Below the pieces are notes generated by a model that was not told the origin of the DNA, made no database searches, and was given only the letters and a program-made list of their open reading frames with translations. 64,000 bases of DNA, taken from the NCBI GenBank assembly GCA_020891255.1, contig BQFW01000009.1, forward strand, positions 868,001 to 932,000, read 5' to 3'. Numbering within the stretch: position 1 is the first letter of the stretch; every line of letters starts with the position of its first letter. The position numbers and the translations under genes are program-made. This stretch comes from Entomortierella parvispora E1425 (taxonomy: Eukaryota; Fungi; Mortierellomycota). This document shows positions 36,802 through 62,146 of the stretch, piece after piece.

Positions 36802-39800
36802 ATGGCCGACTTTGTAAGGACTCGACACAGGAGCGGCGCCATTGACAGTGCCAGTCGCCCATTGCCTCCAAGGATTCCAGTAGCTACAGCCACTACAAGC
36901 AGCACTCTAGACAGCACCTTCGGAAACAGCACCAGCAGCAACAACATCAACATCAACAGCAGCAGCAACAGCACGTCGCCGTCGTCCCCGAGTCGTCTGC
37001 TCCCGCAGCAGTTTCCTGGCCAGCACCTCCAGCCGCCTTTTGTGCCGGTCCAGCAACAATCGCGCATACCCCCCGGCCCCACCTCGGTCCCAGGCATGAC
37101 AAGGTTGCGCTCGGGGTCGAACCCGCTCGTAGAATACCACACCCTTGCAGCGCAGAGGCGCGCACGGGAAAGCAGCAGCAGTGGAAGTGGCGCCAGTATC
37201 AGCACCAATACGAGTTCTGGAACCAGCGCTAGTTCCAACAGCACTAGCATATACGGCTCTATTGACTCGTCGTCTCATAACAGGATACCTTCCCATCTGG
37301 ACGAAACCGGGTTTCGGAGTCGCTCCAGTCCAGGACCAGGAGGATATGGCCAAAGCAGCACTTCCCGGACGGGAACACCAATTGGATCGACCACGACCAC
37401 CAACGCAGGCTCATCGAGCTCACCAGTACACTCACCAGCGTACTCGTCGCCCTACAACGCGGGCTATACGTCGTCAGGTCAAGGAACAACAAGAGCCAGA
37501 GCAGCCACGAGTTCTGGGACAGCAGGATACTTGTTGTCGAACGATAGAAGCGCACATTTGGCGCCGATGGTGCGGGAAAGATCATCTGGGAGCACTAGTA
37601 ACCTCACTACCTCCCCAAGGCAGCCACCCTCTCCCGTGCCTCGGACACACTCGCATTCAGTCTCAGTTCCAGCCGTGTACCCGAACCAACTCTCGAGTCG
37701 GACGCCTACGCCAACGCGTGTCGGGACAGGATTTCCATCACCTCCTTCTGGTTTGCGCTCTTCAATAGCCCCTCCTGCAGCATCAGCACCCTCCTCAACA
37801 TTGTCAGTGTCCAACCCAAGTCAGGGCTCAGCCACCACACGAGCCTCCAGTACGCAGGGCTCAAATAATATCCAAGGTACCTCACCCTTGCAAGGAGCCT
37901 CCGCTGTGGATGTGGTTGGCAAACGTCTTCGAGAGCAACAGCAGCAGGACAGGTTCAAGGCGGCACAGAGCTTTATTGAGCGTACCACAGGAAAAAAGTT
38001 GCCCTCAAGTGATCTGCACGAGTCCCTGAAGGACGGGGTTATTCTATGCGAGTACGACAGCTCTTTTGCGAGTCGGGTTCATTTTGCTGACCGAAACCTG
38101 TTGTTTTTTTTTCTTACCAACACTGACCTCTCTTGTCCAATGCGTTCATAGACTGGCAAACCAACTGAGTCCCAAGATAGTGCGGCTTATTAGTCGAAAG
38201 GAGTTTCCATTTCTTCAGGTAAGAGACCCTTTTTTTGCTGGACGGACGAGAACACAGCAACCACCAACTCGCATCCCAAATCAGGAACAACAAAGACAGC
38301 TACCAGGGCCAAAAAAAACAAACACATCACTGCCGACATCCACGACAGCCTTGACCATGAATTCTGTTGACATCACTAGCCCAGTGGGGTGGTGGTGGCA
38401 CACACCGAAACACGACACTAAACGAACCTCGCTTAAATATCCGACCACGACAACAAAAGAGAGACACACCTATTTTTTTTTGTATACTGACGACACACTC
38501 ATGCCTGTTCATTGACTGGCCCCTGCTCATAGATGGAGAACATCCTCAATTTTGTAGAGGCGGCCAGACAGGTAAGTCTCCATCTTTTTTGATGTTTTGA
38601 TTAGGCAATGGATGAAATAACTTGCTTATCTGTATACATTACCTAAATTATAGCTTGGGGTCCAAAGTTCTGATCTGTTCCAGACCGTGGATCTTTTCGA
38701 GGGCAAAGACATGAACCAGGTATGACGATACGATGCGAATATACTTCGAATGCTGGAATCATTCTACAGATCGTTAATTATTATTGCCGATTTTATCACA
38801 TCCAGGTTGTGTCCACAATTCTTACATTGGAGCGCGTAACTGCAGGAGGAGTGGGAAAGTTAGCAGTCAAGGAAAAAAGACCAGGGCCAAGTCCAATGTT
38901 GCCTCCCAAACCATCTCCAGCACAACCACCAAAAGGACTCAATGGCGCGGTAGGAGTGACCCGAATGCGGTCCAAAACAGCGCACGCCATCGGCGCGGCT
39001 TCAACAACGGCATCCATCAGGCCCTCCTCGTCCGCCTATTACGCTGCCCAAGTACGCAAGTTGGAGGAAGACAGTATTCGATTTGCGAACGGATACGATC
39101 GTCTCGATACGGCCGCGTTTAAAGTCAACGATCGCCACCAAAGCTCGCCAATTCCTAGTAAGAACTCTCCATTTTTGAATAGGGCCTCAATACGGCCAAG
39201 TCTAAGCGACATCCAAGCCGGTCTACAATCAAATCATCAAGATGTCAGCTTTGGTAGTGATGACAGTGGAGACTTGAATCAGCAGCAGGAGGCAGACATT
39301 CGGAGAGAGCAGCGTGATTTGGTCTTCGGGAGCAGTTCACCTTCAGGGTCTATTCCTAAATCAACATCAGGACCTCTCCTGTCTGCTGAAAGCAGGCTCT
39401 CAAATCAGGATGCAGCGAGGAGAAGAAAAAAGAGTATTTCTTTGGATCCCAAGGCCGCCAACGCCGTTATGGGAAGCCCCAATCACCGTGACCCAGGCAG
39501 TCCAGGATTTTTGATTCAATCCGCGTCGTATAGCGCCCTATCCAATATGAACGGCAATAACCAACTCCTCAACCTGAAACAACACTCTCGGTACTCCTCA
39601 GACAAAGATTTCGCAAGCAACAAAGCTGATCTCGCGTCCCCCGCATCTTCAAGATCATCCACTCCAGTACAAGGCGGCGTCAGAAAGAATACCATTTCGG
39701 ATCAGCCTATGCGTGAGAAGCTAGAGCTCTGGGAGAACGACACTCTCACAGCAACATTTGTAAGTTAACATGACATGACTCGTGCATGGCTTTCAGTTGC

Positions 39801-42800
39801 TCCCCTAACGCACTATTTGTGTCACAACTCTTTTTATTACAGAAACTAGGAGGCTTTTGCATTGGGCGCGGCCAATTTGGTGCAGTTTACAAGTAAGATC
39901 CTCATCATACTCCACAATAAGCATAGATGCAGAATCAGATCTTGTCTAATTAGCCATTTCCTTTTTCTTTAACATAGGGCGATGAACATGGTGACAGGGC
40001 AAATGGTGGCAGTGAAGCGAATCAAGATCGATGGTCTCAAAGACGCCGAGATGGATTTGCTGATGCAGGAGGTGGATTTGTTGAAGTCATTGGAGCATCC
40101 GTCCATTGTCAAGTACGAAGGATTTATCAAGACGGACGGCCATCTTAACATCATTCTTGAGTTTGTCGAAAATGGGTCTCTTTTGACGACACTCAAGTCC
40201 TTCGGTACATTTCCGGAGAAACTTGTAGTAGCTTACGTGGTCAAGATCTTGGAAGGCCTCGTATATTTGCATGGAAAAGAGGTTCGATCGATGTCAGCAA
40301 TGCTATGATGGTTTGCTAACGTTATTTTCGGGCCATTGTTTAACCTGGCCTCATCGTGTACATATGCTTTGTTCGCTCAACTAGGTTGTTCACTGCGACC
40401 TCAAAGCGGCCAATATTTTGACAACAAAAAACGGCAATGTTAAATTGTCGGATTTCGGTGTATCCCTCAATCTCAAAGTCAAGGAATCAGATTTTGGAGC
40501 GGTGGCGGGAACACCAAATTGGAGTATGTTTGTTTGATACTGGTTCTTGGTGAAGCACTGTATGCATGGCCCAAAATGACTTATATTGACTTGATGTAAT
40601 CTCTTTCTTAGTGGCCCCTGAGGTGATTGAGCTGAAAGGAGCTTCTCCAGCGAGTGACATTTGGTCCCTTGGATGCACCATTATTGAGATGCTTACTGGA
40701 CGACCGCCCTATGCCGAGTTGTTGGCCATGACCACGCTCTTCCGTATTGTAGAGGACGAGAGACCGCCACTTCCCAACAATTTGTCCGTAGACCTCTTGG
40801 ATTTCCTCTGTCAGTGCTTTCAAAAGGACCCGACATTGAGACCCAGTGCAGGCGCACTTGGCCGACATGTTTGGGTGAAGCGCAATTTTGCCTCGAGGGT
40901 ATGGACGCTTGTCTCCTTTGTTGCTATTTATTCATCATCTGCAATATGATTCTAACCGAAAGTGGTCGGACCAAATTCATTTACTCCCTAGGAGTTGAAG
41001 CCTATGGATAGCCTGCCATATATGACGCGAAAGTCGATGGAGCCGAAAGATAAATCACTTATTACAGCAGCATTGGAAGGTGGTACCAAAAGGGCGTCCA
41101 CACCCTCGGGACTCACATCAGGGGCTCCACCACCTGCAGCATCCGCCTCGATTTTGCATATAGGACGCGGAATACGACGTGGAAGTGTCGACAGTGCTAG
41201 TAGCTACTATTCCTCGACTGTTCCGGGACCATCAATATCGCAGGAGAAGATGTATGAGATGAATAAGGGCGCCAAGATTGGAAACCAGCATCAATTTGTG
41301 AAGAGTTCTTTTGCGAAGCGTAAGCATGACATGTTGCTTGCAAGTTTTCTTAGTCAGCTTCTTCTCGGGTACCACGCTGCTCACACCTACTTCTTTCTCA
41401 AACAGCTGTTGAATGTAGACTGTGCCATGATTTTGTCAAAAAGCAAGCGGTTATCTGCCAAGGTTTGTTTTCGGGAGTTTTTTTTTTTCTTTGTTCAAGA
41501 ATCCTGTGAAGCTCATCCTTTCTTTATTTTATTCCTTTTGTCTAGATTGCAGCTTGGTTTTTCACAGAAAGTGTCAGTTCTACGTTGGGGAGACTTGCTT
41601 CCCAGGCCCTCATCTTTCCTACTTTGGATCGCCTTCACCAGCCCAATCCGTCCCCAACTTGAAGCTTTTGGCCAGCGGAACTCCTCTCAGAAGCAGTCGT
41701 CCCACCTCTCGAACATCTCAACAAAACGACAGATCTAGATCCGTGACACCGTCGCAAGGAACTAGCCGACCGTGTCCAACCCCACCACTTTTGTCTTTCC
41801 CAATGCGCGAAGGAGCCGCTTCCAATGATCGCGCAGATCGGCGCCAAATGTCTCCACCCCCACTGCCACTCAACTCTGTCTATCGAATAAGTTCCCCAGA
41901 AAGTTACCCAGAGTCTGGGTCTTACAACGGTCAAAGTCAACCACCCCGCCCCCCAAGTCGTCAGACTGACAGCCCCACTTCACCTACGCTCTCCGGGTTG
42001 CGCGGCCTAATTTCCGGGCCCAGGCGATTCTCGTTCGGCGCTAAGAAAACACCTCAAAGCTCACCCAGTACCAACCATCATCCATTGCCAACACCCCCTA
42101 CCTCCTACACTTCCAACACAACAGCCTTCAATGCTCAGCGACAAACCCCGACTCCCGATTCTGGACGCTCTTCCGCTAATGGCTACTCTCAAAGTCCAAC
42201 GACCCCTCCTCAAAAATCGATTCCAGTTCCAATTATGAGATCGAAGAATGGATCAGGCGGTCGCCCATACCGCGGGCGGGAATACTTGCCAGGAGGACCC
42301 CTCGACCCCTTTGAGGACGAGCAAAGTAACACCATTCTCAACAATTATGGACGAGGTCACCAAAGACCGAGTTCCATCACCCTGTTCTCCACCAGCGCGC
42401 CACCAGTGCCCGTTGATTATTCGTCTGACAGCCGATCTTCGAGCAGTATCTCCCTGCAGTCGTCCTTGCACTCCTCCTTTACAAAATACTCTGACGACGA
42501 AGATGATGACGACCATAACATTGACGACATTGATGACATGGACGAGCGGGATTTGGAGGCGTTGTTAATCCCATCCGTCGTCCGGACGCCTAGGACCAGC
42601 ATCGATGCGGGCCATCCTATGATTGGGTACCGAAGCAAAAGTCAATCCATCAGTCAGACCCTAAGCCAACAGCAACACCAGAGCCGACTGGACGAGGAGT
42701 TTGCGTCCTTGAAGGCATTTAATGCCAAGTCTGCGGCTCAGGATATTCACAAAAAGTCCCCACCAAAAGCCCCAGCTGCCATTAGCTTTGGATCTCCTCC

Positions 42801-43668
42801 AGGAAACCGCGACAAGTTCATTCCTCACCATCGAGCTCAGCGATCGTTTGGATCAACTGCCGCCACTACCGATAATGCTGCCGCTCCTACAGCAATTGCC
42901 CCCCCTACTTCGAGGCAGAGAAAGATTTCCACCAGTAGCTCCTCTGGCTCGTCCCTGGGCTCAATCGCAGCACATTTGGAGGAAGAGGAGCGAATGATGA
43001 AGTTGTCTCTTGGTCTTGGAGGCCCAGTTCCAGCCAGCAAGAGTCCAAAGCCTCTGTCTGCGTACCAGATGGCCACATCCCCACCTCAGTCGAACCATGT
43101 CGGCCTCAAGACGATGCTCAGTCGGTTGTCGCCTTCGACCTCGAACGCAACTGTGACTGCAACGACAACTTTGAACGGAGCACCACCAGCACAAGAGGCT
43201 CAACCGAACCAGACGAGTCGGGATTCGTCCAAGGCTTCAGTAGCCTATGCAGCAGCGGCTCGTCATCAGATCCAGGCTCCTCTGCAATATCAACAGCATC
43301 CCCATTCGCAACCGCCGCCTCGATCCATCCACCCGTTTCAACCTTCGTCCTCAGAGACTTCCTCGGACTACAACGGTCATCCTTATGGAGGAGCGGTCAA
43401 GGGCGAGATTTATCCACAGCACCTGAATGGCTACGGACCAGGGCATGGAGGCAACAATGGGTTTGCACAAGGGAACAATGGCCGGAATGGTCGCACGACC
43501 CCAGGGGGCGACCTAGTATCTCCACCCATCCCGGCTCCTTTGTCTTCAAATAACGCTTCGACCACGGTTGCATCCTCTGCTGCCGCTGCTGCCGCTTCCT
43601 TGGCATCCTCGGCATTGAAGCGAGGGGGGAAAGTGATTCGACGCAGCATTGGCGCCACTGAGCGCTGA
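36802..43668 (+). CDS. Cdc15/SepH-like (STE-group) Ser/Thr kinase with calponin-homology domain, kinase domain and C1 domain; multi-exon
   Basis: CH domain across exons (LHESLKDGVILC..MENILNFVEAA..DLFQTVDLFEGKDMNQ..VVSTILTL). Kinase motifs IGRGQFGAVYK, VAVK, HCDLKAAN, DFG, GTPNW|MAPE and DIWSLG. C1 motif HQFVK...C..C...C..C...H..C split over exons at about 41290-41600. Confidence 0.85.
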
Positions 43669-43979: not shown

Positions 43980-46412
43980 ATGTCATGGAGTGACCCTGAA
44001 TTTATAAAGGACTTTATCCGCAGTTCTCATCTTCCACAGCCATCCAGATTCCTCACTCCAGAAATCGTCATTCAAGAGTCTCAGGCGCATGTGAAGAACA
44101 TCTTTGACGATTGGAACTTGCTGAACCGAATCATTCTGCGACATGAGGCCTCCATCCAAAAGCGATGGCTCAAAAAATCGCGCGAGCAGCGACGCAACAC
44201 CCTGCTCCACGCCTGGCCTCAGATGCCCAAGAAACATCTCCCGGACTTGGAGGTTTATCTTGATGAAAATTCAAATCAACCTTCGAATAATCCGGCCTAT
44301 CTTTGGCCATCCATCAACCAGGAAGACCTTTTGAGACCAAAGATTCTGCTTATCTTTCTCAATGCTCGAGGTCGACACTACCCATCCGTCTTTACTGCTG
44401 CAGACGAGCTATCATTCAAACTGGGCCGAGTCGGCGGGAAGAAGATGCCAGGATTTCTCAACGAGTATACGATGCTGTTCACTGGACGCAACTCGCGTTT
44501 TACCTACGGGCAACTATACAGCTGGGATGAGCACGAAGATGTATTTGATTGGCAAATGAGTGGCTCTGCTCATAATCCTGGCCTCGGCCTCATGATCCTC
44601 GAAGTGCAGGAGCGTATATACCGATTTCTTGTCAATTGCTGTCTCCGTATCCTCCATATGACTCGCAAGGATGCCATGGATGATATCACCCCAATTGGGC
44701 CGGAACCGCCAGCCATTTCCATGATCGACGGTCCAATGTACTCTCTGTCTGATGTCGCAGCCGCGACCCCTTATTCGGTGCCCGCCAAGCTGGACCTTGG
44801 TCGTCTCCGCGAGCTCATTGCCGCTAGGCGCTCGACTGCCGAGGATCATTTCTGGTCCCTTCGAGAGGACCCTGGGTATTTTGAAAAAGCTCTTCTCGAA
44901 ATGAAGGATCACCGAGGGGAAACTCTTTTGGACATTCGTGGACGACCCCACTCCTTAATGTCCACCTGGAAGTCGAACGAATTCTGGAAGCGCGTGGTTA
45001 GCAAGCTAATTCTCGAGGCAAGCGGTATGCTGGAGGTGTGGCACATCCTGCTATCTCAGATCGACAAGTTGATAGCCCTTCAGAAGAAGTACGATGGCCA
45101 GCTCAAAGTCGAATCCCCCCTACCTGAAGAGCTCCTGATGGCTTTCTTGGACCTGGAGTTCAGTATTGATGTCTATATGAAAATTCCTTTGACATCCCTG
45201 AAGCAAACTGTCGTGGCGTCCCCCCCTCTGCGACGTTGGTTCGCTCGCATGCCAGAAGAAAACCCACGGATGATCGCCGTAACACCAAAACCGAGTGTGA
45301 GCAAGGACGAAACACAGACGAGGCTCCTATGGCTCTTCCAAACATTGTTTGATGAACGTCAACGCTTTTTGATCGGTGTACTCCCAGTGCTGGATATGAT
45401 GGAACGTCTGGTCCAGAACGACCCAAAGTCTCGGGATCTTTTTTCAAGCATCGTTGCAGACTCCATTTCAGACTATTCACTCCTTGCAGAGGTTCAGAGG
45501 CAGATCCAACTTTTTCAGCCGTGGGCGTCCACCTTTGAACATGATGCAGTCGAGCGAACAAAGATCATACGGCCCAGGTACATTGCGCGTACGAAGCGTT
45601 TGGCTCAAGTGGAGGAAGCCTTTGGATCCATTGATACCAGCGTTGCGGACCCATCGGACAAAAAGTTTTATTATCCGGCCGACAAGAGAAGAACTAAGGA
45701 GAACACACTGGCGATGCAGAAGGCGGAGAAGAATCTGGACGAGTTCTGGGACATGGTTGATCGAACCCTTTTGAAGACGGTCAACAATTCAAAGAATGGA
45801 GAGTGGACATGCTTATTGCCACCCGATCGAACGCTGCAGAGGACCCCTGATTGGGTTGAACCTGCGCCTGCTGTGTCGGTCCTGGACAGGAAGAAAGCAG
45901 GAGATCAGGTCGAAGAGTTGATGTTGGGACTTGAGCTGCGATCGGAGAGCACGACGGACAACAAGGAGACAAAGCAGCAACAGAAGGAGAAGGTCAAGAC
46001 TCGCGGGACTGCAGCGGCTCCAGCTGCTAAAACGACAACCGAGGGAACAAAAGAAGAGACCAATGTCTCTTCGCAAGTGGAACCTCAGCCGACTTTCAAG
46101 TTGGACAAGAAAGCTTTGAAAGTGTTCTCAACCTTGTTCTACCAACCCTCGACGTCATCGAAGCCTGGAGAGATTCCCTGGAGCGACTTTTTGCATGCCA
46201 TGACGAAGACTGGATTCACAGCGGAAAAGATGCTTGGATCTGCGTGGCACTTTTCACCTATCAACACTGATATGGGAAGGAGCATTCAGTTTCACGAGCC
46301 TCACCCGTCGAGCAAGATCCCGTTCAACATTGCGAGAGGCTTTGGAAGGCGATTGTTCAGGAACTATGGATGGAGAGGCGACATGTTTGTTCTTGAGGAT
46401 CCGAAAGTGTAG
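43980..46412 (+). CDS. Tandem paralog 1 (810 aa, intact): large N-terminal region plus C-terminal HicA-like domain
   Basis: Single long ORF. The C-terminus reads KALKVFSTLF..GEIPWSDFLHAM..GF...GSAW....RSIQFHEPHP..KIP..ARGFGRRL..YGW. Confidence 0.85.
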   Translation: MSWSDPEFIKDFIRSSHLPQPSRFLTPEIVIQESQAHVKNIFDDWNLLNRIILRHEASIQKRWLKKSREQRRNTLLHAWPQMPKKHLPDLEVYLDENSNQPSNNPAYLWPSINQEDLLRPKILLIFLNARGRHYPSVFTAADELSFKLGRVGGKKMPGFLNEYTMLFTGRNSRFTYGQLYSWDEHEDVFDWQMSGSAHNPGLGLMILEVQERIYRFLVNCCLRILHMTRKDAMDDITPIGPEPPAISMIDGPMYSLSDVAAATPYSVPAKLDLGRLRELIAARRSTAEDHFWSLREDPGYFEKALLEMKDHRGETLLDIRGRPHSLMSTWKSNEFWKRVVSKLILEASGMLEVWHILLSQIDKLIALQKKYDGQLKVESPLPEELLMAFLDLEFSIDVYMKIPLTSLKQTVVASPPLRRWFARMPEENPRMIAVTPKPSVSKDETQTRLLWLFQTLFDERQRFLIGVLPVLDMMERLVQNDPKSRDLFSSIVADSISDYSLLAEVQRQIQLFQPWASTFEHDAVERTKIIRPRYIARTKRLAQVEEAFGSIDTSVADPSDKKFYYPADKRRTKENTLAMQKAEKNLDEFWDMVDRTLLKTVNNSKNGEWTCLLPPDRTLQRTPDWVEPAPAVSVLDRKKAGDQVEELMLGLELRSESTTDNKETKQQQKEKVKTRGTAAAPAAKTTTEGTKEETNVSSQVEPQPTFKLDKKALKVFSTLFYQPSTSSKPGEIPWSDFLHAMTKTGFTAEKMLGSAWHFSPINTDMGRSIQFHEPHPSSKIPFNIARGFGRRLFRNYGWRGDMFVLEDPKV

Positions 46413-46711
46413 CCTTTTGTTTACAAACAATAGATGAAATGGTATTTATGAGGTTTTGTGTTGAGTTGCCCTTTGTTCACAGGGTAACTCGTTGGGATCT
46501 GATCTAGGTTAGAAGCTGCAACTGCCTCCATGAGTTCATGAAGAAGCAGGTACAGGAAACGTAATGAAAGGGAAAAAAAATCGACGATTGGGCGAAGTTT
46601 TTAAGGTTGCACCCAAAGAAGCGACTGTCCTTATTTTCAATTATTTGATGCATCAGACTCCATCTGCATTTCATTTCGTCAAACCTCAGCACATCTTGCA
46701 GGTCAATCAAA

Positions 46712-49136
46712 ATGTGGAAAGATCCCTTCGATGGTCTCCCCCCGCCATCCCGAAGTCTCACTCCAGGAATCGTCATCCAGGAGTCTCAGGCGCATGTCAA
46801 GAACATCTTTGACGACTGGAACTTGCTGAACCGAATCATTCTGCGACATGAGGCCTCCATCCAAAAGCGATGGCTCAAAAATCGCGTGAGCAGCGACGCA
46901 ACACCCTGCTCCACGCCTGGCCACAGATGCCCAAGAAACATCTCCCGGACTTGGAGGCTTTTCTTGATGAAAATTCAAATCAACCTTCGAATAATCCGGC
47001 CTATCTTTGCCCAACTCTCAACCAGGAAGACCTTTTGAGGCCAAAGATTCTGCTTATCTTTCTCAATGCTCGAGGTCGACACCACCCATCCGTCTTTTCT
47101 GGTGCAGATGAGCAGTTGTTCAAACTGGGCCGAGTGAGCGGAGCAAGAACTCCAGGATCTCTCTTCGGCTATACGATGGTATTTACCGGACACAACTCGC
47201 CTTCGACTTATGGACGGCTCTACAGCTGGGAAGAGAACGAAAATGCATTGGAGTGGCAAATGAGTGGCTATGCCCATTATCCTGGCCTCGGCCTCATGAC
47301 CCTTGAGGCACAGGAATGCGTGTATCGATTTCTAGTCAACTGTTGTCTCCATATCCTCCAGATAACACGCGAGGATGCCATGGCCGATGACACCCCAATT
47401 GAGCCAGAACCGCCAGCCGTTTCCATGGTCGACGGTCCAATGTACTCTCTGTCTGATGTCGCAGCCGCAACCCCTTATTCGGTGCCCGCCAAGCTGGACC
47501 TTGGTCGTCTCCGTGAGCTCATTGCCACCAGACGCTCTGCCGCTGAGGATCATTTCTGGTCCCTTCGGGAGGACCCAGGTTACTTTGAGAGTACCCTTCT
47601 CGAGATGAGGAACCACCGAGGGGAAACTCTTTTGGACACCAATGGAAAACCACACTCCTTAATGTCCCCCAGGAAGTCGAACGAATTCTGGAAGCGCGTG
47701 GTAACCAGGGTGCTTATCGAAGCAAGCGGTACTCTTGAGGTGTGGCATACCCTGTTGTCCCAGATCGACGAGCTGATAGCCCTTCAAAAGAAGTATGATG
47801 GCCAACTCAGAGAGGAATTACCTCTTCCAGATGAGCTTCTGATGTCGTTCTTGGATGTGGAGTTCAGTCTCGGTAATTACATGGACATTCCAATGCGGTC
47901 CCTGAATCATATTGTGTTGGCATCCCCCCAAATGCGAACTTTGTTTGCTCGTGCGCCTGAGAGCAACTCAAGGCATGTCGACATTATGATAAGGCCCAAC
48001 ATCAGCATGGACTCTACGCAGAAAAAGCTACTTTGGCTTTTCCAGGCCTTGTTTAGCGATACCCAACGCCGCCTAGTCGGCGCAGTTCCACTACTAGATA
48101 TGATGGAACGTCTTGTTCTAAACGACCCAAAGTCTCGGCATCTGTTCTCGGGGATGGTTGCGGACACCATTTCGGACTATTCACTCCTTGCAGAGGTTCA
48201 GAGGCAGATCAGGCTCTTTCAGCCCTGGGCGTCCACCTTTGAGACGGCGGTCAAGGAGCAGCAGAGTGTCATCTTGCCAAGTTCATTGGGCGTACGGAGC
48301 GCATAGGTCAAGCGGAGGCAGCTCTTGAGACCATTGATACTAGTATTGCAGATCCTACGGACAAGAAGTTTTACTACCCTGCTGATAAGAGAAGAACCAA
48401 GGAGAACACGCTGGCGATGCAAACGGCCGAGAGGAATCTGGACGCATTCTGGAACTTGATTGACCGAACTCTTTTGAAAACGGTCAACAGTTCAAAGAAC
48501 GGAGAGTGGACATGTTTATTGTCACCCGGTCGGATGTTGCAGCGAACCCCTGACTGGGTTGAACCCCCACCCAAGGCGTCAAAGAAGGACAAGAAGAAAA
48601 CAGGAGCCCAGGTCGAGGAGCTGATGTTGGGACTTGAACTCCGATCGGAGAGCACGACCGACAACAAGGAGACGAAGCAGCAACAGAAGGACAGGATCAA
48701 GACGCGCGGGACTGCAGCGACTCCAGCTGCTAGAGCGACAACCGAGGGAACAAAAGAAGAGACCAGTGTCTCTTCGCAGGTGGACCCTCAGCCGACTTTC
48801 AAGTTGGACAAGAAAGCTTTGAAAGTGTTCTCAACCTTGTTCTACCAACCCTCGACGTCGTCGAAGCCTGGAGAGATTCCCTGGAGCGACTTTTTGCATG
48901 CCATGCGACAGACCGGATTCAAAGGTGTAAAGATGTATGGATCTGTGTGGCACTTTTCACCCATCAACCCTGATATGGGAAGGAGCATTCAGTTTCACGA
49001 ACCTCATCCGTCGAGCAAGATCCCGTTCAACATTGCAAGGGGCTTTGGAAGGCGATTGTTCAGGAACTATGGATGGAGAGGCGACATGTTTGTTCTCGAG
49101 GATCCGAAAGAGCAGGCGGCAATAGTAGTCGAATAG
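46712..49136 (+). pseudogene. Tandem paralog 2, split by two 1-bp deletions (about 46877-46881 and 48277-48280)
   Basis: ORFs 46712-47038, 46870-48306 and 48417-49136 align collinearly with paralog 1. The A-run has 5 A here against 6 A in paralog 1 (44172-44177). A second shift lies at ttgccaagttc. Confidence 0.75.
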
Positions 49137-49441
49137 TCCAGTATTTAAATATGAAGTTTGAAGTCGAGCAGGTCTTTGTTCTCTGGTTGGCACATGGGAA
49201 CCGATTATCTTGGAACAGGCTCAACAACCGTGTCGCGAGAAAATAAAAAAATAAAAATTACACACACACACCAGTGCTAAACCTTATTCCCCTTTACTCT
49301 CAACCCAATAAACGCTTTGTTCATTCCTTTCATTCTCAACTTCATCCCTCTGCTCCATCCGACCGTTTGTCCTCTTCCCCCATCCGCATTCCTCCCTTTG
49401 AGAATCCTCTTCTCCGCGATATCATTCAAAGGCCAATCAAA

Positions 49442-51862
49442 ATGTTTGACTCGTGGTTCTTCGAGGAGGATGAGTATGTGCCGCCGCCAAAGCCCATTGT
49501 CCTTTCTGCAGAGATCATCGACATGGGGTCAAAGCTGTATGTCAAGAAAATCTTTGAAGACTGGAACCTGCTGAACCATATCATCCTACGACATGAGGCC
49601 ACGATCCAAAAGAAATGGCTCAAAAAGTCGCGCGAACAACGGCGAAACACCTTGCTGCATGCATGGCCTGAAATGCCCAAGAAGCACCGCCCTGATATGG
49701 AGGTTTTCCTTGAAGAGAAGTCATTGCATCCTTCGACCAACCCAGCGTATCTTTGGCCTGACATCAACCAAGAGGATCTCTTAAAGCCCAAGATCCTACC
49801 CATTTTCCTCAATGCGCGAGCTCGACACTATCCATCCTTCTTTGCTGGAGCAGATGCGGATTCGTTCAAGTTTGCTCGGAGCGCTGGAAAAGTGACACCG
49901 GCATTTCTTCACGAACATACAATGATGTTCACTGGGCACAACTCTTCTTCGACTTATGGACGACTTTACAGCTGGGAGGAAAACGACGATGCGTTTGAAT
50001 GGCAGGTGTCTGGTCGAGGTGTTCAAGGTGGACTGGGCCTCATGGTCCTCAAGGTGCAGGAGCGCGTGTACCGATTCCTGGCCGATTGCTGTCTTCATAT
50101 CCTCCAGATGACTCGCGAGGCAGCCATGGCCGATACCACCCCAATTGAGCCGGAACCGAAAGCGCAGTCCATGATCGAAGGTCCAGTGACCTCTCTGTCC
50201 GATATTGCAACCGCAACTCCGTACTCAGTGCCCGCCAAGCTAGACCTCGCTAGTCTTCGTGAGCTCATTGCCGCCAGACGCTCTGATGCTGAGGACCATT
50301 TCTGGTCACTTCGAGAGGACCCCAGCTATTTTGAGAATGCCATCTTGCAGACAAAAGAACACCGACAGGAATTTCTTATGGACATCCATGGAGAACTACA
50401 CTCGTTGGTATCTCCACACCTGACGCGCGAGTTTTGGAGACGTGTGGCCCACAAAGTGATTATGGAAGCCCATTGCCTCCTCGAAGTGTGGCATATTTTG
50501 CTGAACCAAATAGATGAGCTGATGGCTCTACTGAAGAAATATGAAGGTCAGCTCAAAGAAGAATCGCCTCTTCCGAAAGACCTTCTGAATTGCTTCTTGG
50601 ACTTGGAATTCAGTCTTGGCATCTATATGGACGTCCCATTGCATATCCTGAAGCACATTGTCGTGGCGTCACCTCCATTGCGAGCTTGGTTTGCTCGCAA
50701 ACCCGAGGTCCACCCGTTGCTGCTGATGGAAGTTGTGGTGAAGCCGTACGTCAGCAAGGATGTTACCCAGATGAAGCTGATCTGGCTCCTGCAAGCGCTA
50801 TGCGACGATCAGCAACGCCACCATGCCGGCGCACTTCCTCTATTGGATATGATGGAGCGTTTAGTTGAAAACGACCCCAAGTCTCGGAATCTGTTCTCGG
50901 CCAAGGTTTCGAGTACTATTGGAGATTACTCACTCTTTGCAGAGGTTCAGAGGCAGATCAGACTCTTCCAACCGTGGGCGTCAACGTTTGATCGGTATGC
51001 AGCCGAGCGAGAGGCGATCAGCAGGTCCAACTACATCAAGCGTACTCGGCGGATGATGCAAGTGGACGAGGCCTTCAAGTCCATTAATACCAGCGCTGCG
51101 GATCCCACGGACAAGAAATTTTACTATCCAGTAGACAAAAGGAGAACCAAGGAGAATACATTGGCGATGCAAAAAGCCGAGAGGAATCTGGACAAGTACT
51201 GGGACGAAATTGATCGTCTCATGCTGAAGACAGCCAACGATTCGAAAAACGGAAAGTGGACATGCTTGTTGTCATCAGATCGGACGTTGCAGCGAACGCC
51301 TGACTGGGTTGAACCTGCACCTGCTGTGTCGGTCCAGGAAAAGAAGAAGAAGGAGGTGCAAGTCGAGGAGCTGATGCTGGGTCTTGAACTTCGATCGGAG
51401 AGCACGACTGACAACAACGAGATGAAGCAACAACAGAAGGAGAAAGTCAAGACTCGCGGAACTGCTGCGTCTGCCGAAACATCATTGGCCCCAGAAACAA
51501 CGGAAGAGACGGACGATTCCGCGCCGGTCGACCAGGAGCCGACTTTCAAGCTGGACAGCCGAGCTTTAAAAGTGTTCTCAACTTTGTTCCATCAGCCTTC
51601 GATGACTTCACTGCCCGGCGAGATCCCTTGGATCGACTTTTTGTATGCCATGCGAAAGATGGGATTCACAGAGACAAAAATGTATGGATCTGTCTGGCAT
51701 TTCTCGCCAGTCGGCACAGATTTGGGAAGGAGCATTCAAATTCATGAACCGCATCCGTCCAAAAAGATTCCGTTCAACACTGCCCGACGCATTGGAAGGC
51801 GACTTTTCAGGAACTATGGGTGGAGAGGCGATATGTTTGTTCATGAGGATCCCAAGGCGTAA
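49442..51862 (+). CDS. Tandem paralog 3 (806 aa from ATG 49442, intact) with C-terminal HicA-like domain
   Basis: Single ORF collinear with paralog 1. C-terminal GEIPWIDF..GF...GSVW..IHEPHP..RRIGRRL..YGW. Confidence 0.85.
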   Translation: MFDSWFFEEDEYVPPPKPIVLSAEIIDMGSKLYVKKIFEDWNLLNHIILRHEATIQKKWLKKSREQRRNTLLHAWPEMPKKHRPDMEVFLEEKSLHPSTNPAYLWPDINQEDLLKPKILPIFLNARARHYPSFFAGADADSFKFARSAGKVTPAFLHEHTMMFTGHNSSSTYGRLYSWEENDDAFEWQVSGRGVQGGLGLMVLKVQERVYRFLADCCLHILQMTREAAMADTTPIEPEPKAQSMIEGPVTSLSDIATATPYSVPAKLDLASLRELIAARRSDAEDHFWSLREDPSYFENAILQTKEHRQEFLMDIHGELHSLVSPHLTREFWRRVAHKVIMEAHCLLEVWHILLNQIDELMALLKKYEGQLKEESPLPKDLLNCFLDLEFSLGIYMDVPLHILKHIVVASPPLRAWFARKPEVHPLLLMEVVVKPYVSKDVTQMKLIWLLQALCDDQQRHHAGALPLLDMMERLVENDPKSRNLFSAKVSSTIGDYSLFAEVQRQIRLFQPWASTFDRYAAEREAISRSNYIKRTRRMMQVDEAFKSINTSAADPTDKKFYYPVDKRRTKENTLAMQKAERNLDKYWDEIDRLMLKTANDSKNGKWTCLLSSDRTLQRTPDWVEPAPAVSVQEKKKKEVQVEELMLGLELRSESTTDNNEMKQQQKEKVKTRGTAASAETSLAPETTEETDDSAPVDQEPTFKLDSRALKVFSTLFHQPSMTSLPGEIPWIDFLYAMRKMGFTETKMYGSVWHFSPVGTDLGRSIQIHEPHPSKKIPFNTARRIGRRLFRNYGWRGDMFVHEDPKA

Positions 51863-52130
51863 CCTTTTTGGGCATCTGGATTCCCTCTAGACTCGAGAAT
51901 ATATTTATAAAGTTTTGCTTTGACCAACAGTTTGTGGGCCATGGGTTGACGCGTGTTTTCACTCGGTGTCGCCAAAGCTTTTCATGACCGACGTCTGATG
52001 TGTGCATACTCTTAAATGTAATGAATGCGGCGCGTCTGATGAACCTCATTCCCCCTCCCGTCAAATGACATCCTCATCTTCTTCCAACTTCTTCCATCTT
52101 GGTCCTTGACACAATCCAATTCATTTCGAA

Positions 52131-54506
52131 ATGCCGAGCAATCCGCAAGCATTCATATTCTTAACGCCCGATATTGTTCTCAAGGAGTCCAAGAAGCACG
52201 TCAAGAACATCTTTGACGACTGGAACTTGTTGAACCATATCATCCTTCGACACGAGGCCACGATTCAACAGAAATGGCTCAAGAAGTCGCGCGACCAGAG
52301 ACGAAACACCTTGCTCTACGCCTGGCCTCAGATGCCCAAGAAGCATCGTCCCGACATGGAAGCTTTCTTGGAAGAGGGATCGCGTTTCTACGCCACCAAT
52401 TCCGATGTCTATCTCTGGCCAGACATTAACCAGGAAGACTTGCTAAAGCCCAAGATCCTGCCGATTTTCCTCAACGCTCGAGCTCGACACTACCCATCCG
52501 TGTTTGCCAGCACTGATGAGCAGTCTTTCAGGTTTGCCCAGGCCGGTGGAATAGTGACGCTAGGATATCTCGACGGCTTCACAATGATGCTCACTGGTCA
52601 GAACTCGCCTTCAACGTATGGAAAACTCTCGACTACGTTTGGTCTCAAGATGCCTGATCGGGGGGTCAAACCTGGCGTGGGTCTTCTTATCCTCAAGGCT
52701 CAGGAACGTGTGTACCGATTCCTTGTCGATTGCTGTCTTCATGTCCTCCAGATGACGCGCGAGGCGGCTATGGCCGATGCCACCTCCATTGAGCCGGAAC
52801 CACCAGCGCTGTGCATGATCGACGGTCAAATGCACTCTCTGGCTGATGTCGTTTCCGCAGCCCCTTATTCTGTACCTGCCAAACTCGAGCTTGGTCGTCT
52901 CCGTGATCTCGTTGCTGCCAGACGCTCCGCTGCCGAAGATCATATCTGGTCCTTTCGAGAGGATCCAGGCTATTTCGAGAATGCTATCATCGAGATGAGG
53001 GAGCATCGGCAAGAGATGCTTTTGGACACTCATGGACGGCAGCACTCATTGATGGCACCCAGCGGGTGGAACGACTTTTGGAGGCGCGTGATCCGTAAAG
53101 TGATTCTGGAAGCAAACTGTTTTCTTGAGGCGTGGCATGACCTGTTGTCCCAGATCGACGAGTTGATCGCGCTTCAGAAGAAGTATGAAGGCCAACTCAA
53201 AGAGGACTCCCCTCTACCGAACGAGCTCTTGAACGCCTTTTTGAACTTGGACTACAGTCTCGTCGGCTATATGAAGATCCCATTGACGATCCTGAGGGAT
53301 GTGCTTTATGGGTCTCCCCCTTTGCGCCAGTGGTTTGATCGCAAGCCTGAGGTGAACCCACTGATGATCGGTGTGGTTGATAAACCAAACATGGAAAAGG
53401 ACCCAACTCTGACAAAGCTCCTCTCGCTTTTCAACGTTTTGTTTATCGAGGACCAGCGAGATCTAGTCGGTGTGTTTACAGTCATGGACATGATTGAGCG
53501 TCTGACTCAGAACGACCCGAAAGCTCGAAATCATTTTTCAAGCAAGATTGCGAATACCGTTGCAGATTATTCACTCCTGGCAGAGGTTCGAAGGCGGGTC
53601 AAGCTTTTCCATCCATGGGCGTCGACATTTAAGGAGGAGGCGGACGAGCGACAAGAGATGACGTTTTCTTATCACTGTAACCATACCTTGCGGATGGCTC
53701 AGGTGGAGGCAGCCTTCAAGCCCATCGATATCAGTATCGCAGAGCCCTCAGACAAGAAGTTTTACTACCCAGCAGAGAAGAGGAAAACCAAGGAGAATAC
53801 GCTTGCGATGCAAAAGGCCGAGAAAAATCTGGACGAGTTCTGGGACAAGATTGACCGAGCCGTTCTGAAGACAGTCAACAACTCGAGGGATGGAGTCTGG
53901 ACTTGTCTGCTGTCACCCGGCTGAACACTACAACGAACCCCTGACTGGGTTGAGCCCGCGCCCAAGATTTCAGCCAAGGACAAGAAGAAGGAGGAAAATC
54001 ACTTGGAAGATCTGGTTCAGGGGCTTGATCTCTGCTCGGGGAGCTCGACTGACAGCAAAAAGTCGAAGAAAAAGCAAGGCGATATGATCGAAGCTCAAGC
54101 ACTTGCTGGCACCAGCGAGGTGGTGTTGTCCAACGATACAGCAGGAGAGACTGACACGTCCAAGCAGGAGACCAACCACCAACTGAACTTCAAATTGGAT
54201 AAACGAGCATTGAAGGTGTTCTCGACCTTGTTTTATCAGCCTTCGATATCTTCACAACCCGGCGAGATACCTTGGAACGATTTTCTGTATGCCATGAGGG
54301 AGGTGGGGTTCAAGGATCAGAAGTTGTACGGATCATTGTGGCATTTCACACCTACAAACTCGGATATGGGAGCAGGAATTCAATTCCATGAGCCGCATCC
54401 TGTCAGCAAGATCTCGTTCAATACTGCCCGGCTCTTTGGAAGGCGACTGGCCAGGAACTATGGATGGACGAGCGACATATTTGTTCCCGAGGACCCAAAG
54501 ATGTAG
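52131..54506 (+). pseudogene. Tandem paralog 4 with in-frame TGA at 53922-53924 (CGA/CGG Arg in the other copies); reading frame otherwise intact to 54506
   Basis: ccc ggc TGA aca cta caa cga acc cct gac tgg aligns with ccc gat CGA acg ctg cag agg acc cct gat tgg in paralog 1. The downstream ORF 54003-54506 is in the same frame and contains FHEPHP. Confidence 0.75.
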
Positions 54507-55863
54507 CTTTTTTTAATTAGGGCAATGCAATAATATTCATGGGTCTTGCTGTTGAACATCTGCGCAAAGAGGTTTTGATCACAGGGAGTGTGGCTGTGTG
54601 TTTGAATGTCATTCGGGTTCTGTTATTGGAGCTTCACGAGGTTGATCAAGGAATTACTGTTGACGCTCTTCGTCCAGCTGATATCACGATTGTTGCAGTG
54701 TCTAGAAGTTCCTCACTTGTTGTCACTTTGGCTGCCCTGTGGACCTATATCATTTTCTGCCAACCGGGGGAGTGATCATCCCAATTTATTCCAGCATGCG
54801 CGTGGATGACTTTCAAACCATATTGGGCGCAGCGTTCAATATGGTTGTGGTGGTACCAAACCATGTGGCCCGTGTGTTGTTTTTGTGCACGACGCTCTTT
54901 GTCGCGATAATTCCAGCGGACGGTGCAGACGTGCGGACGAAACCATATTGGTGTGCTGCCTTGTTGAGAGCTGGGTATCGTGATACTTGAGCAGTCTGCT
55001 TGGATAGTGATGAGGTCAGACAGCATCTTTTGAGAGTGGATTGTCAGGTTTTTCCTCTTTTTCCTCTTTTTTTTTTTTTTTTTTTTTTTAAATTTCATTT
55101 GATCTTTTAATAAGTGATGCAGAGGTCTATTGAAACTATGGTGGCCATGTCTTGTCGGTTCATCGATCGGGCGCTGTTCTTGAGTACCTATTCCTACTTG
55201 CACTCTTGCCAAGGGACAAAGCTGAAAAGAGGAGGAAGAACGGGAAGGCGAACTCACCATGATCATGGCATTCAAAAGCTCGAGTCCTCGACCTAGTCCT
55301 TGATCTAGTCCTTGATCTAGTCTGTGAGAAAGGCACCTCCAACAACAACGCCAGTTTATTTCATATTTGCATCCTGAAAATTCCTGATCGTCCTCGAGTC
55401 CCGTGGAAAGGATGAAAACGTTAGTATGTTAGTATGTTAGTATGTCAGTAAAACACCCCCAACAACAACGCCAGTTTATTTCATATATGCATCCTGATCT
55501 TGACCTAGACCTATCAAGAAAAAAAAAGAAAAGCCTGGGACGGAGGAGAGGGTGAGTACGAAGGAGCTTGTTCTTTTTGATCATAGAGCGATAGAGAGCG
55601 AGGGGGAAGTATCAGGTAAGGAGGCAAGAGTGCAAGTGAGTGAGAAAAGGAGCGAGAAAGCGAGATCAGTGAGAGCAGACGTCCAGCAACAGCAAAGGGA
55701 ACAAACTTGTCGTTGAAAGGCAGCGTGGTGAAAGGTGGTGGTAAAGGTGGTGAAGGTTGCCGTGAAAAGTTGTGGTGAAGATGAAGGTGGTGAAGATGAG
55801 AGCGAAGGGCTGAGGAGAGTGGAAAGTGGAAAGTGAAGAGGGGAGTGAAGGGTTGGAAGAGAA

Positions 55864-56977: not shown

Positions 56978-57384
56978 CTTTCTCCTTTCTCCTTCTCTTT
57001 CTCTCCCCAACCCTTCACCTACCTCTCCCTCTCCATCTGGCACCACCACAACCAACAAGACCACCACCACCACCAACACCTTTCACCTTCACCGTCACCT
57101 TCACCTTAACATTCAACTTCAGCTTCATCCTCACAATGTTGCTTCACGATAAGTTTGTTCTGTTTGATGATGTTGAAGCCATCTGTTCTTACTAATCTCG
57201 ACTTCTCGTTTTTTTTTTCTTCTCCTTCTATCACTTACTCGCACTCTGGCCTTTCCTCCTTACTCTCATACTTTCCAGCCCTCGCTCTCTGTCTCTATGA
57301 TTAAGATGATCAAGTCAGCTCGTACTGACCCTCACTTATGTCCTCTTCTTAGCATTTTGCTCCCTTTTTGATAGGTTTTTAGGT

Positions 57385-58585
57385 GAGGACATGGAAGAGT
57401 TGGACATGGATAGGGAGTTGGTGGACAAGGAAGAGGTGGACATGGACAGGGAGTCGGAGGACAAGGAAGAGGTGGACATGGACAGGGAGTCGGAGGACAA
57501 GGAAGAGGTGGACATGGACAGGGAGCCGGTGGACAAGGAAGAGGTGGACATGGACAGGGAGCCGATGGACAAGGAAGAGGTGGACATGGACAGGGAATCG
57601 GAGGACATGGAAGAGTTGGACATGGACAGGGAGCCGGTGGACATGGAATAGTTGGACACGGACAGGGAGCCGGTGGACAAGGAAGAGGTGGACATGGACA
57701 GGGAGTCGGAGGACAAGGAAAAGGTGGACATGGACAGGGAGCCGGTGGACAAGGAAGAGGTGGACATGGACAGGGAATCGGAGGACATGGAAGAGTTGGA
57801 CATGGACAGGGAGCCGGTGGACATGGAATAGTTGGACACGGACAGGGAGCCGGTGGACAAGGAAGAGGTGGACATGGACAGGGAGTCGGAGGACATGGAA
57901 GAGTTGGACAGGGACAGGGAGTCGGAGGACATGGAAGAGTTGGACATGGACAGGGAGTTGGAGGACATGGAAGAGTTGGACATGGACAGGGAGCCGGTGG
58001 ACAAGGAAGAGGTGGACATGGACAGGGAGTCGGAGGACATGGAAGAGTTGGACATGGACAGGGAGCGGTGGACAAGGAAGAGGTGGACATGGACAGGGAG
58101 TTGGAAGACATGGAAGAGTTGGACATGGACAGGGAGCCGGTGGACAAGGAAGAGGTGGACATGGACAGGGAGCGGTGGACAAGGAAGAGGTGGACATGGA
58201 CAGGGAGTTGGAAGACATGGAAGAGTTGGACATGGACAGGGAGCGGTGGGCAAGGAAGAGGTGGACATGGACAGGGAGTTGGAAGACATGGAAGAGTTGG
58301 ACATGGACAGGGAGTCGGAGGACATGGAAGAGTTGGACATGGACAGGGAGCGGTGGACAAGGAAGAGGTGGACATGGACAGGGAGTTGGAAGACATGGAA
58401 GAGTTGGACATGGACAGGGAGCGGTGGACAAGGAAGAGGTGGACATGGACAGGGAGTTGGAAGACATGGAAGAGCTGGACACGGACAGGGAGTCGGTGGA
58501 CAAGGAAGAGGCGGACATGGACAGGGAGTCGGAGGACATGGAGGAGTTGGACATGGAAGAGCTGGACATGGACAGGGACACGGAC
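57385..58585. repeat. Purine-rich minisatellite with 36-bp units and 35-bp variants
   Basis: Units such as gacatggacagggagccggtggacaaggaagaggtg and gacatggacagggagtcggaggacatggaagagttg. The right half contains 1-bp-shorter units (gagcggtgg). Confidence 0.95.
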
Positions 58586-59159
58586 GACTTGGGCGACTTT
58601 GGACGTACTGATCATGGTGAGTTTTCATTTCCCCTCTCTTCATCCTTTTCTTCTCCCTCCATTGGCAAGAGTGCAACTAGGGATAGGTTCCAAGAGCAGC
58701 GCCGATCGACAAGCCTACAAGACATCACAGCCGTAGTCTGATAATCCTCCAACTTTTATTAAATAAATGATCAAACGAACTGCGTGGTCAAGACAACTTG
58801 TCAATCCCAAAAAAAAAAAAGTGAACGAGGTGTTGGAGCCTTGGTTGACCACTGATATCAAAGCCGTTGATCTGCAGCAGTAGCCGGTACCAAGCATGTA
58901 CGCAACTTTTGGTGTAGTATCTCACTGATACAATGAGGTGCCTTGGCAGAGTGGCTCTAGCGCACACACTGTTAAAACGGCAAATAGGCCGTTGATCAGT
59001 GCCAATGCTGAGGCTCAGTCCCAAAGTCTCTATTTGTATTCACCTCCACAACTGAACCGTGGGCAATGAAGTATGACATTGACGAAAGAGAGAGAATTCG
59101 GAACAGCTCTTGTATTGTTTTTAATAAATGAAGGATTTTCGTTATTTTTTTAAATGTCT

Positions 59160-61062: not shown

Positions 61063-61606
61063 TGTTGGTGCAATTGTGAATGAGAAGAGAAGGTTGATGG
61101 AAGAAGAAAAGACGTTCTGAACTGAATAAAAAGAGCGGAAATAAAAGCCCGGGGCGTGGTCGCGCGATGGTGCAATTGGGCCGTGGGAGACTGACTGTTC
61201 GCTGGATTCGATTCGACAGCGCGCCTGCGTTCGTCCGTCCCTGCACTTTCCTGCACCACCCGAGTCATCTTGCACAACCCCAACACGGGCAATAGGTGAA
61301 GAAGGGCCATAGACTAGCGGGGCCATAGACTGTCTGCCAGTGCTCTACTTCACACAGAGGAGAACATCTTTCCCCTTTCCCCCTTGCACCTCCCTTCTCC
61401 TTCATCGCAATCGATGCATCAAGCAGACTCCAGGAGAGGAAATCGGCCTGCAGAGGGATTCAATACCAACTGAGCGCCAGGCGCCAACGGCGCAGGTCAA
61501 AAATAAAAAGACGGCGTGCAGCATCCTTGTTCTTTTCATTTCGCATCATTGTCTGCGGCATCATTTCCATTCGTCTCCATTGACCCGCCTCAGGTTCACA
61601 AAACAG

Positions 61607-62146
61607 ATGCTAACTACAGAGATTCGCCCATTCAACCCCCGGGACCAACAGGCAGTTCGCGACCTGGTCCTGGAGGGCCTAGCGGAGCGTTGGGGTGCAG
61701 AATTCGACACCTCATACAACAAAGACCTAGAGGACATTCAGGCCTACTACATAGAACGCCACCAAGCAACCGTGGTCGTGCTTCTTCAACAACAACAGAA
61801 TCACCCTGAACATCGTCGCATCATTGGCTGCGGTGTCCTGCTCCCCTTGCCTGCAGAGGACATTTACGGCGCCTGGTGTTCTGAGCCTCCATCTTCCTCG
61901 GGCCCAAACGAGACAAAGTCCTGTTGTCGGATGATGAGACTCTCTGTGGCAAAAGACTGCAGAGGTCAGGGTCTCGCCAAGAGGATCATTCGTCATCTTA
62001 TCGAACAAGCAAAAGAGCGGCACTTTGAACGGATCCTGGTCGAGACCCAGACGGCCTGGACAAGCGCTGTGGGGATTTATCGCTCCATGGGATTCCAGGT
62101 CATCGAGGCAGGCGAAGAAAATGTTCACTGCGAGTTGGACATATAG
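61607..62146 (+). CDS. GNAT-family N-acetyltransferase, intronless (179 aa from ATG 61607)
   Basis: IIGCGVL; motif A MRLSVAKDCRGQGLAKRII; ILVET..W.SAVGIYRSMGF. Confidence 0.85.
   Translation: MLTTEIRPFNPRDQQAVRDLVLEGLAERWGAEFDTSYNKDLEDIQAYYIERHQATVVVLLQQQQNHPEHRRIIGCGVLLPLPAEDIYGAWCSEPPSSSGPNETKSCCRMMRLSVAKDCRGQGLAKRIIRHLIEQAKERHFERILVETQTAWTSAVGIYRSMGFQVIEAGEENVHCELDI

Follow-up and report, generated by a model that had tools for sequence, protein, structure and literature searches.

HicA toxins, as described so far, are single-domain ribonucleases (RNases) of 50-100 amino acids that adopt the fold of the domain that binds double-stranded RNA (dsRBD) and depend on one essential histidine next to a Gly-Ser pair in the β1-β2 turn, where HicB masks it (PMC11594946, PMC6159526). 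(The reference positions of this catalytic residue are His23 in the Ec, His24 in the Bps, His28 in the Yp and His36 in the Stp protein.) The review of HicAB describes HicA from bacteria and bacteriophages only (PMC11594946). The subject of this analysis is a four-copy tandem array in the genome of the fungus Entomortierella parvispora E1425, lying at positions 43980-54506, on the + strand, of a 64,000-nucleotide stretch (contig BQFW01000009.1, positions 868,001 to 932,000, referred to below as the window). The array consists of direct repeat units encoding paralogs of ~806-810 amino acids, each with a small C-terminal domain whose predicted fold is HicA-like.

On balance we lean towards the joint reading that the array arose by lineage-specific tandem expansion from a single member of a large, uncharacterised fungal family of three-part proteins (body, linker and C-terminal domain), that the C-terminal domain is a relative of HicA and that it is governed in cis. 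If so, a known toxin fold has entered a eukaryotic architecture that is new, with its putative active site altered and no antitoxin at hand. Members of the family occur in Mortierellomycota, in Ascomycota and in one basidiomycete at least; literature searches found no paper on it, or on any fungal or other eukaryotic HicA-fold protein.

Fold and conserved residues of the C-terminal domain

The AlphaFold2 model of the C-terminal domain, made with a 48-sequence alignment, has a predicted local distance difference test score (pLDDT) of 89.1 and a predicted template modelling (pTM) score of 0.82. In domain numbering, it runs from a short strand through helices 5-14 (helix 0) and 29-38 (helix 1), strands 41-45, 50-55 and 64-67 and a basic helix, 77-91 (helix 2), to a last short strand. 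Residues 23-99 form a HicA-like core, which has the dsRBD-type α-β-β-β-α order that the sequence-only reading of the window had proposed and on which solved HicA structures superpose over 56-68 residues at a root mean square deviation (rmsd) of 2.5-3.1 Å. When VIA-align compared the model, with no pre-filter, with 48,161 cluster representatives of the PDB, HicA chains took ranks 1-4 and 8; these five representatives are covered over as many as 68/70 and 61/61 residues at 2.5 Å rmsd, with a gap before the next match. Foldseek, which the same reading had named as a check, gave no match to the domain model at E ≤ 0.001, though its best compact superpositions are also HicA (6g26_E, with a probability of 0.93 and a template modelling (TM) score by target of 0.66; and 1whz). 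In the ESM Atlas, models of bacterial HicA-HicB fusions superpose on residues 702-802 of the fungal protein (2.8 Å over 93 residues), and PF07927, the HicA_toxin family of Pfam, is found on 26% of the members of a cluster of family fragments. Scanned in six frames with PF07927, the entire genome (38.9 Mb) produced only two candidates, both within the array, copy 3 being the best match genome-wide (19.2 bits, per-genome E of 0.05). We take the modelled fold to be HicA-like with good confidence, and the domain to be probably homologous to HicA, as a very distant relative.

Residue counts were made over 137 family representatives, and the consensus that had been read from the four copies holds family-wide. 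G48 and S49, each kept in 134/137, lie in the turn between strands 41-45 and 50-55, where HicA has its Gly-Ser. The classical histidine is absent from its place beside them, as had also been noticed at the outset: position 50 is Val, Ala or Ile in 133/137, W51 is present in 134/137 and position 52 is Gln in 89 and His in only 32. The segment that follows the third strand is nearly fixed (H67 in 136/137, E68 in 135/137, P69 in 137/137, H70 in 136/137 and P71 in 126/137). K45, K74, R81, R85, R86 and R89 are nearly invariant, and helix 2 is for that reason strongly basic. The corresponding segments of E. coli HicA are G-S-N-H and, after β3, M-P-R-H-P, with G20, H23, P36, R37 and H38 invariant in 25 relatives. 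As judged from these alignments, then, the turn scaffold and the Pro/His segment are common to HicA, the known catalytic histidine is not, and a new polar H-E-P-H motif is fixed, for which a catalytic, a metal-binding or a structural role may be considered. (In copy 1 numbering, the key residues are G753/S754 and H772, E773 and H775.)

The family, its body and its evolution

The closest database proteins are E. parvispora EMPS_06945 and EMPS_06947, which puts the window in Mortierellomycota and not in Ascomycota. Homologs that align at 88-100% length coverage occur in Mortierellomycota (47-66% identity) and in many Ascomycota (38-46%), and also in Lipomyces and Amanita; all those found go by the name 'hypothetical', and precomputed Pfam domains are lacking for every one of them. 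When the C-terminal domain was run as a profile, exhaustively, against 1.84 billion representatives, 2,063 clusters (counted at 50% identity) came up at E ≤ 0.001, 405 of them at E ≤ 1e-30. Comparison of 146 of the best 150 matches with copy 1 showed every one (146/146) to be of the same family or a collinear C-terminal fragment; the remaining four are family members that were already in the alignment. One 1,751-residue entry consists of two fused tandem copies of the family protein. The domain is found in 118 of the 120 homologs that the first search listed, ending within 10 residues of the C-terminus in 114, and the two sequences without it are partial. That regularity, together with the collinearity of the fragments, implies a single, obligate family architecture. 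The family has no small single-domain protein of 50-100 amino acids such as is typical of HicA: in every case the domain closes a protein of ~800 residues, and shorter entries are collinear fragments. The N-terminal motifs RHE..IQK.WLKK, AWP.M, WP.INQEDL, FLNAR and LREDP.YF, which the sequence-only reading had picked out in the array, are conserved across 52 homologs.

In the full-length AlphaFold2 model of copy 1 (pLDDT 84.3, pTM 0.82) the body is mostly helical and reaches to about residue 603, and the linker at residues 639-701 is disordered (pLDDT about 30). The body has no Pfam domain and no known-fold match, and what language-model and shape searches match to it is limited to fungal uncharacterised clusters. 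It does have many invariant polar residues, including D289, R295-E296-D297, D318 and H324. When the model is compared with the ESMFold model of an ascomycete homolog, 753 residues spanning 1-808 superpose, with a TM score of 0.86 by query. That score goes beyond what the body alone (79% of residues) could yield and the C-terminal domain is therefore placed alike in the two models, which is suggestive of a defined intramolecular interface between body and domain.

The linker has a feature of its own. Within residues 664-676 (~45969-46010) a nearly invariant K-x-K-V-K-T-R-G (K671, K673, T674, G676) stands amid poorly conserved sequence in all homologs; this basic motif may serve as a signal for nuclear localisation or as a place of cleavage or modification.

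The four copies group together as a clade (100/100) in a maximum-likelihood tree of 52 family members, with Podila/Dissophora as their sister group, which makes the expansion lineage-specific; in the E. parvispora genome, members of the family are confined to the four copies of the array. The Mortierellomycota sequences are monophyletic (100/100), and the inter-phylum branch is short (0.26) compared with terminal branches (0.3-1.0). Within Dikarya the gene tree disagrees with the species tree, with Aspergillus in three separate places, Lipomyces inside an otherwise Sordariomycetes clade and Amanita nested among Ascomycota sequences; this pattern suggests either old paralogy with loss or transfer between fungi. 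Gryganskiella has several divergent copies. A recent transfer from a bacterial endosymbiont (bacterial origin was one of the possibilities that the sequence-only reading had left to phylogeny) is ruled out, because the Mortierellomycota sequences are monophyletic within a pan-fungal family for which no bacterial relative was found.

Pairwise synonymous divergence (dS) is 0.47 between copies 1 and 2 and 1.0-1.4 for the remaining pairs. The ratio of nonsynonymous to synonymous divergence (dN/dS) among the paralogs lies at 0.18-0.28 overall and, for the C-terminal domain alone, at 0.05-0.23; this domain is the most constrained part of the protein, and in no 60-codon sliding window does the ratio exceed 1. 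The family is under strong purifying selection over its full length. The identity of copies 1 and 2 is a mosaic (62-96%), high at the 5' end (95-96%) and the 3' end (91-94%) and low in the middle (62-67%), where, at codons ~420-480, it is as low as in any other pair and dS is saturated. Given this mosaic, the stretches of high identity, which lie approximately at 44080-44380 and 45980-46412 in copy 1 and at 46790-47090 and 48690-49136 in copy 2 (identity 91-96%, dS 0.08-0.24), are read as gene-conversion tracts; the pattern indicates an array that would have been partly homogenised by gene conversion after its expansion.

The locus and its neighbours

The coordinates are collected in Table 1. 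The sequence-only reading had described four head-to-tail, intronless paralogs of ~800 amino acids with a period of ~2.7 kb and spacers of ~270-305 bp, next to an intron-rich kinase gene. The geometry is as described (start-to-start distances of 2704, 2746 and 2644 bp) and the kinase is borne out by a Pkinase domain split over at least three short exons within 39982-40946. The absence of introns holds for the array copies, but not for some orthologs, which contain them; and the four paralogs stand as repeat units, but only copies 1 and 3 are uninterrupted, which that reading had missed. The spacers of the array are AT-richer (GC 0.40-0.45) and, at pairwise identities of 31-49%, not mutually alignable.

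Table 1. Positions in the window of the array, its parts and the upstream kinase exons
Feature	Position	Strand	Size or residues	Remarks
Upstream kinase exons	39982-40305 (E 3e-19), 40418-40534 (E 0.0025), 40611-40946 (E 1.6e-18)	+		Pkinase matches
Copy 1	43980-46412	+	810 aa	intact gene; uninterrupted open reading frame (ORF), translation checked
Copy 1, helical body	43980-45788		residues 1-~603
Copy 1, disordered linker	45894-46082		residues 639-701
Copy 1, HicA-fold domain (predicted)	46095-46409	+	residues 706-810
Spacer 1-2	46413-46711		299 bp
Copy 2	46712-49136	+		interrupted frame, splits into three frame pieces; predicted HicA-fold domain ~48798-49112
Spacer 2-3	49137-49441		305 bp
Copy 3	49442-51862	+	806 aa	intact gene; ORF and start checked; predicted HicA-fold domain 51545-51859
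Spacer 3-4	51863-52130		268 bp
Copy 4	52131-54506	+		in-frame TGA, otherwise collinear and conserved; predicted HicA-fold domain 54189-54503

The interruptions can be located. In a four-way DNA alignment, copy 2 has, relative to the other copies, single-base deletions after 46876, where a run of six A is reduced to five, and after 48276; in copy 4 a single in-frame TGA at 53922-53924 lies within a 798-codon frame whose coding sequence is conserved on both sides. The NCBI model of copy 2, EMPS_06945 (722 aa), begins downstream of the first frame break, and that of copy 4, EMPS_06947, with 768 aa, falls about 30 aa short of the read-through frame, which is consistent with an intron having been modelled over the TGA. 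The present analysis corrects two gene models of the E. parvispora genome. The breaks could reflect true pseudogenisation or assembly error (a suspicion that falls above all on the deletion in the A-run), and copies 2 and 4 are possibly decaying.

No HicB-like antitoxin gene had been visible in the window at first sight, and the same is true on a wider view: the HicB families PF15919 and PF05534 have zero candidates in the whole genome, while control genomes register, and no HicB lies beside orthologs in five neighbourhoods. These five neighbourhoods have no common partner gene. In four of them (Aplosporella, Amanita, Thermothielavioides and Linnemannia) the neighbours are ordinary metabolic genes, and PEMT synteny joins the two Botryosphaeriales genomes. 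In Diplodia seriata, a NACHT (NPHP3_N)/TPR gene of the NOD-like receptor (NLR) type, encoding 2,131-2,181 amino acids (14805-21530), lies 2.3-2.4 kb downstream of the ortholog; the other four contexts are without it. The Diplodia neighbourhood also has a kinase gene.

In the window itself, the kinase gene upstream of the array is probably longer than its recognised exons, extending over about 38.7-43.7 kb; ORFs on the + strand at 38722-39768, 40995-41738 and 41491-43668 have no Pfam match and may be non-catalytic extensions of it. Downstream of the array there is a 60-nt direct repeat (55318-55377 and 55438-55497, 88%), followed at 57332-58741 by long overlapping ORFs on both strands with no Pfam match. 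At 61340-62146 (+ strand) lies an ORF for a GNAT acetyltransferase (Acetyltransf_1, E 9.6e-13) and at 62473-63372 (- strand) one with a weak NAD(P)H-binding match; both are ordinary genes, unconnected with the array.

Possible functions and comparison with known systems

In the mechanism that goes with our preferred reading, the C-terminal domain would bind RNA by way of its basic helix 2; catalysis, if any, would fall to the invariant H-E-P-H loop and not to the histidine that HicA normally uses; and the body, acting in cis, would target or regulate the domain as a substitute for a free-standing HicB. That the family protein acts as an RNase or a toxin, that its body is an antitoxin in cis and that it has a part in immunity are conjectures.

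A number of observations weigh against the preferred reading. The Pfam scores fall well short: HicA_toxin gives 13.4-19.2 bits against a gathering cut-off of 27, so that the membership in PF07927 that had been put forward for checking does not hold. HicA_toxin matches 13 of 137 diverse members at E ≤ 1 (best E 0.001) and ties as the most frequent weak Pfam match; the clearly spurious Herpes_gQ2 also matches 13/137. Neither the domain profile nor a single sequence found a match among PDB sequences. Comparison by hhalign of two domain profiles with a 25-member E. coli-type HicA profile was not significant, the profiles being narrow (effective number of sequences, Neff, 1.6-2.7) and the aligned part only 7-8 columns (P-H-P..K-I), and an E. 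coli-type HicA hidden Markov model (HMM), run with filters off, scores about 1 bit on the fungal domains. No bacterial intermediate turned up when 185,579 bacterial and archaeal genomes were scanned for sequences related to the domain. (The sole prokaryotic match, a 273-residue apparent membrane protein from a Pseudomonadota metagenome-assembled genome (2593-3414), has the string G-R-R-L-R-R-N-Y-G-W as in the fungal helix 2 and was judged to be a chance match.) The histidine that is replaced by Val, Ala or Ile and Trp beside the Gly-Ser is the only one that HicA is known to need for cutting RNA (PMC11594946), with the equivalence of positions set by secondary-structure register, not by residue-level structural alignment. 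Two of the four array copies are interrupted. A two-chain complex prediction of body (1-640) and domain (702-810), in which the chains were folded without alignments, scored 0.00 and speaks neither for nor against docking.

Two other accounts of the family protein survive about equally well, and we regard both as doubtful. The first is the model put forward in the sequence-only reading, a single-chain, toxin-antitoxin-like conflict module in which an RNase toxin is silenced by the body and released on mycovirus infection, non-self contact or stress, for example by linker cleavage, with growth arrest or death as the outcome. The HicA-like fold and the invariant polar H-E-P-H loop would suit such a toxin, but the canonical catalytic histidine is missing from it. 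A conserved basic motif in a disordered linker, the lack of any separate antitoxin and a placement of domain on body that different predictors reproduce are all compatible with silencing within one chain; the complex prediction mentioned above is neutral on it. The several copies found here, some of them interrupted, the fused double copy known from elsewhere, the divergent copies of Gryganskiella and a Dikarya gene tree strongly incongruent with the species tree are the marks that a gene in conflict might bear, but no paralog window has dN/dS >1, and an 800-residue architecture so strongly conserved across phyla is more like that of a cellular function than of an arms-race gene. The single ortholog that adjoins a NACHT-TPR NLR gene has to be set against the ordinary metabolic genes of the four other neighbourhoods and the local synteny in Botryosphaeriales. 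The specific suggestion of an immune or allorecognition role is unsupported, on account of these neighbourhoods and of dN/dS staying below 1 in every 60-codon window.

The second account makes the C-terminal domain a non-catalytic RNA- or protein-binding module with no toxin function, the real activity residing in the conserved body. Two helices bind RNA in HicA and in dsRBDs (PMC6159526), and the fungal domain has lost the catalytic histidine while keeping a basic helix 2 (R81, R85, R86, R89) and K45/K74, as might be expected of a binding module. An H-E-P-H motif kept in 135-137 of 137 representatives is, however, more typical of a catalytic or metal-binding site, and it is the C-terminal domain that is the most constrained part of the protein. 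The body has the invariant polar residues that an activity of its own might call for but no recognisable enzymatic fold. Purifying selection over the full length and the ordinary gene neighbourhoods are in keeping with such a domesticated role.

Less likely again is the most far-reaching form of the idea, according to which the protein would be the eukaryotic, single-polypeptide descendant of a toxin-antitoxin RNase, with a new H-E-P-H site, silenced by docking on a fungal-specific 600-residue body and released, perhaps by linker cleavage, to degrade RNA in virus infection, non-self fusion or stress. If that were true, the family would be a widespread and undescribed cell-autonomous defence or death effector of fungi. 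Convergence, that is, an unrelated small α/β fold with Pfam matches that arise by chance, we hold to be quite improbable: the lack of a significant profile or HMM comparison or of a Foldseek match at E ≤ 0.001, and spurious families that match as often as HicA_toxin, would be in line with it, but it sits badly with five HicA representatives at the top of the structural ranking at near-complete coverage and followed by a gap, with a Gly-Ser at the same turn and a P-x-H-P-like segment after the same strand, and with an array that holds the sole PF07927 candidates in 38.9 Mb.

Returning to the preferred reading, an active domain would amount to a toxin fold with a re-engineered RNase site, under the in-cis control of a 600-residue domain that is itself new, and an inactive one to a toxin fold that has been domesticated for RNA binding. 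In both cases the analysis defines a new fungal domain family that can be tested, for which H772, E773, H775 and G753/S754 are candidate key residues.

Among known systems, canonical dsRBDs (those of ADAR, TRBP and the Dicer partners) have the same overall topology as the fungal domain and give weak Foldseek matches (7zj1, 3llh, 3vyx), but they fit far worse than HicA (probability 0.08-0.15, rmsd 6-8 Å) and are absent from the top ranks of VIA-align, and the family gives no dsrm Pfam match at E ≤ 1-10. Fungal NLR and HET-type modules do not offer a likeness either, the body having neither a NACHT/NB-ARC, HET, HeLo or comparable signature nor any other Pfam domain or fold match, and every window a dN/dS <1. 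The fold of the body recurs in fungal ESM Atlas clusters, mostly from Ascomycota, that bear the names 'Ipa protein' or 'Ipa protein family protein' (residues 37-237 and 271-633, with TM scores by query of 0.59-0.67). This is an automatic label, for which no Pfam family or literature was found; one of these clusters, of 637 residues, may be without the C-terminal domain.

It is with bacterial and archaeal HicA (PF07927, COG1724; structures 1whz, 6g26, 5yrz, 4p78 and 6hpb) that the predicted domain has its fold, its Gly-Ser turn and its basic helix 2 in common, and the Pro/His segment after β3 reads P-R-H-P in EcHicA and E-P-H-P in the fungal proteins. HicA stands alone at 50-100 amino acids, is encoded beside HicB and has its essential histidine (PMC11594946, PMC6159526). 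The fungal domain, in contrast, forms the end of a eukaryotic protein of ~800 residues, without HicB, and adds an N-terminal helix, a longer β2-β3 loop, the invariant H-E-P-H and an invariant Trp. In the bacterial HicA-HicB fusions (an ESM Atlas cluster with PF05534 on 96% and PF07927 on 60% of its members) the partner is a recognisable HicB of about 100-150 amino acids, whereas the fungal body, of 600 residues, is helical and unrelated, with no PF05534 or PF15919 signal; what the two have in common is a HicA fold, in the fungal case a predicted one, that is covalently joined to a putative regulator.

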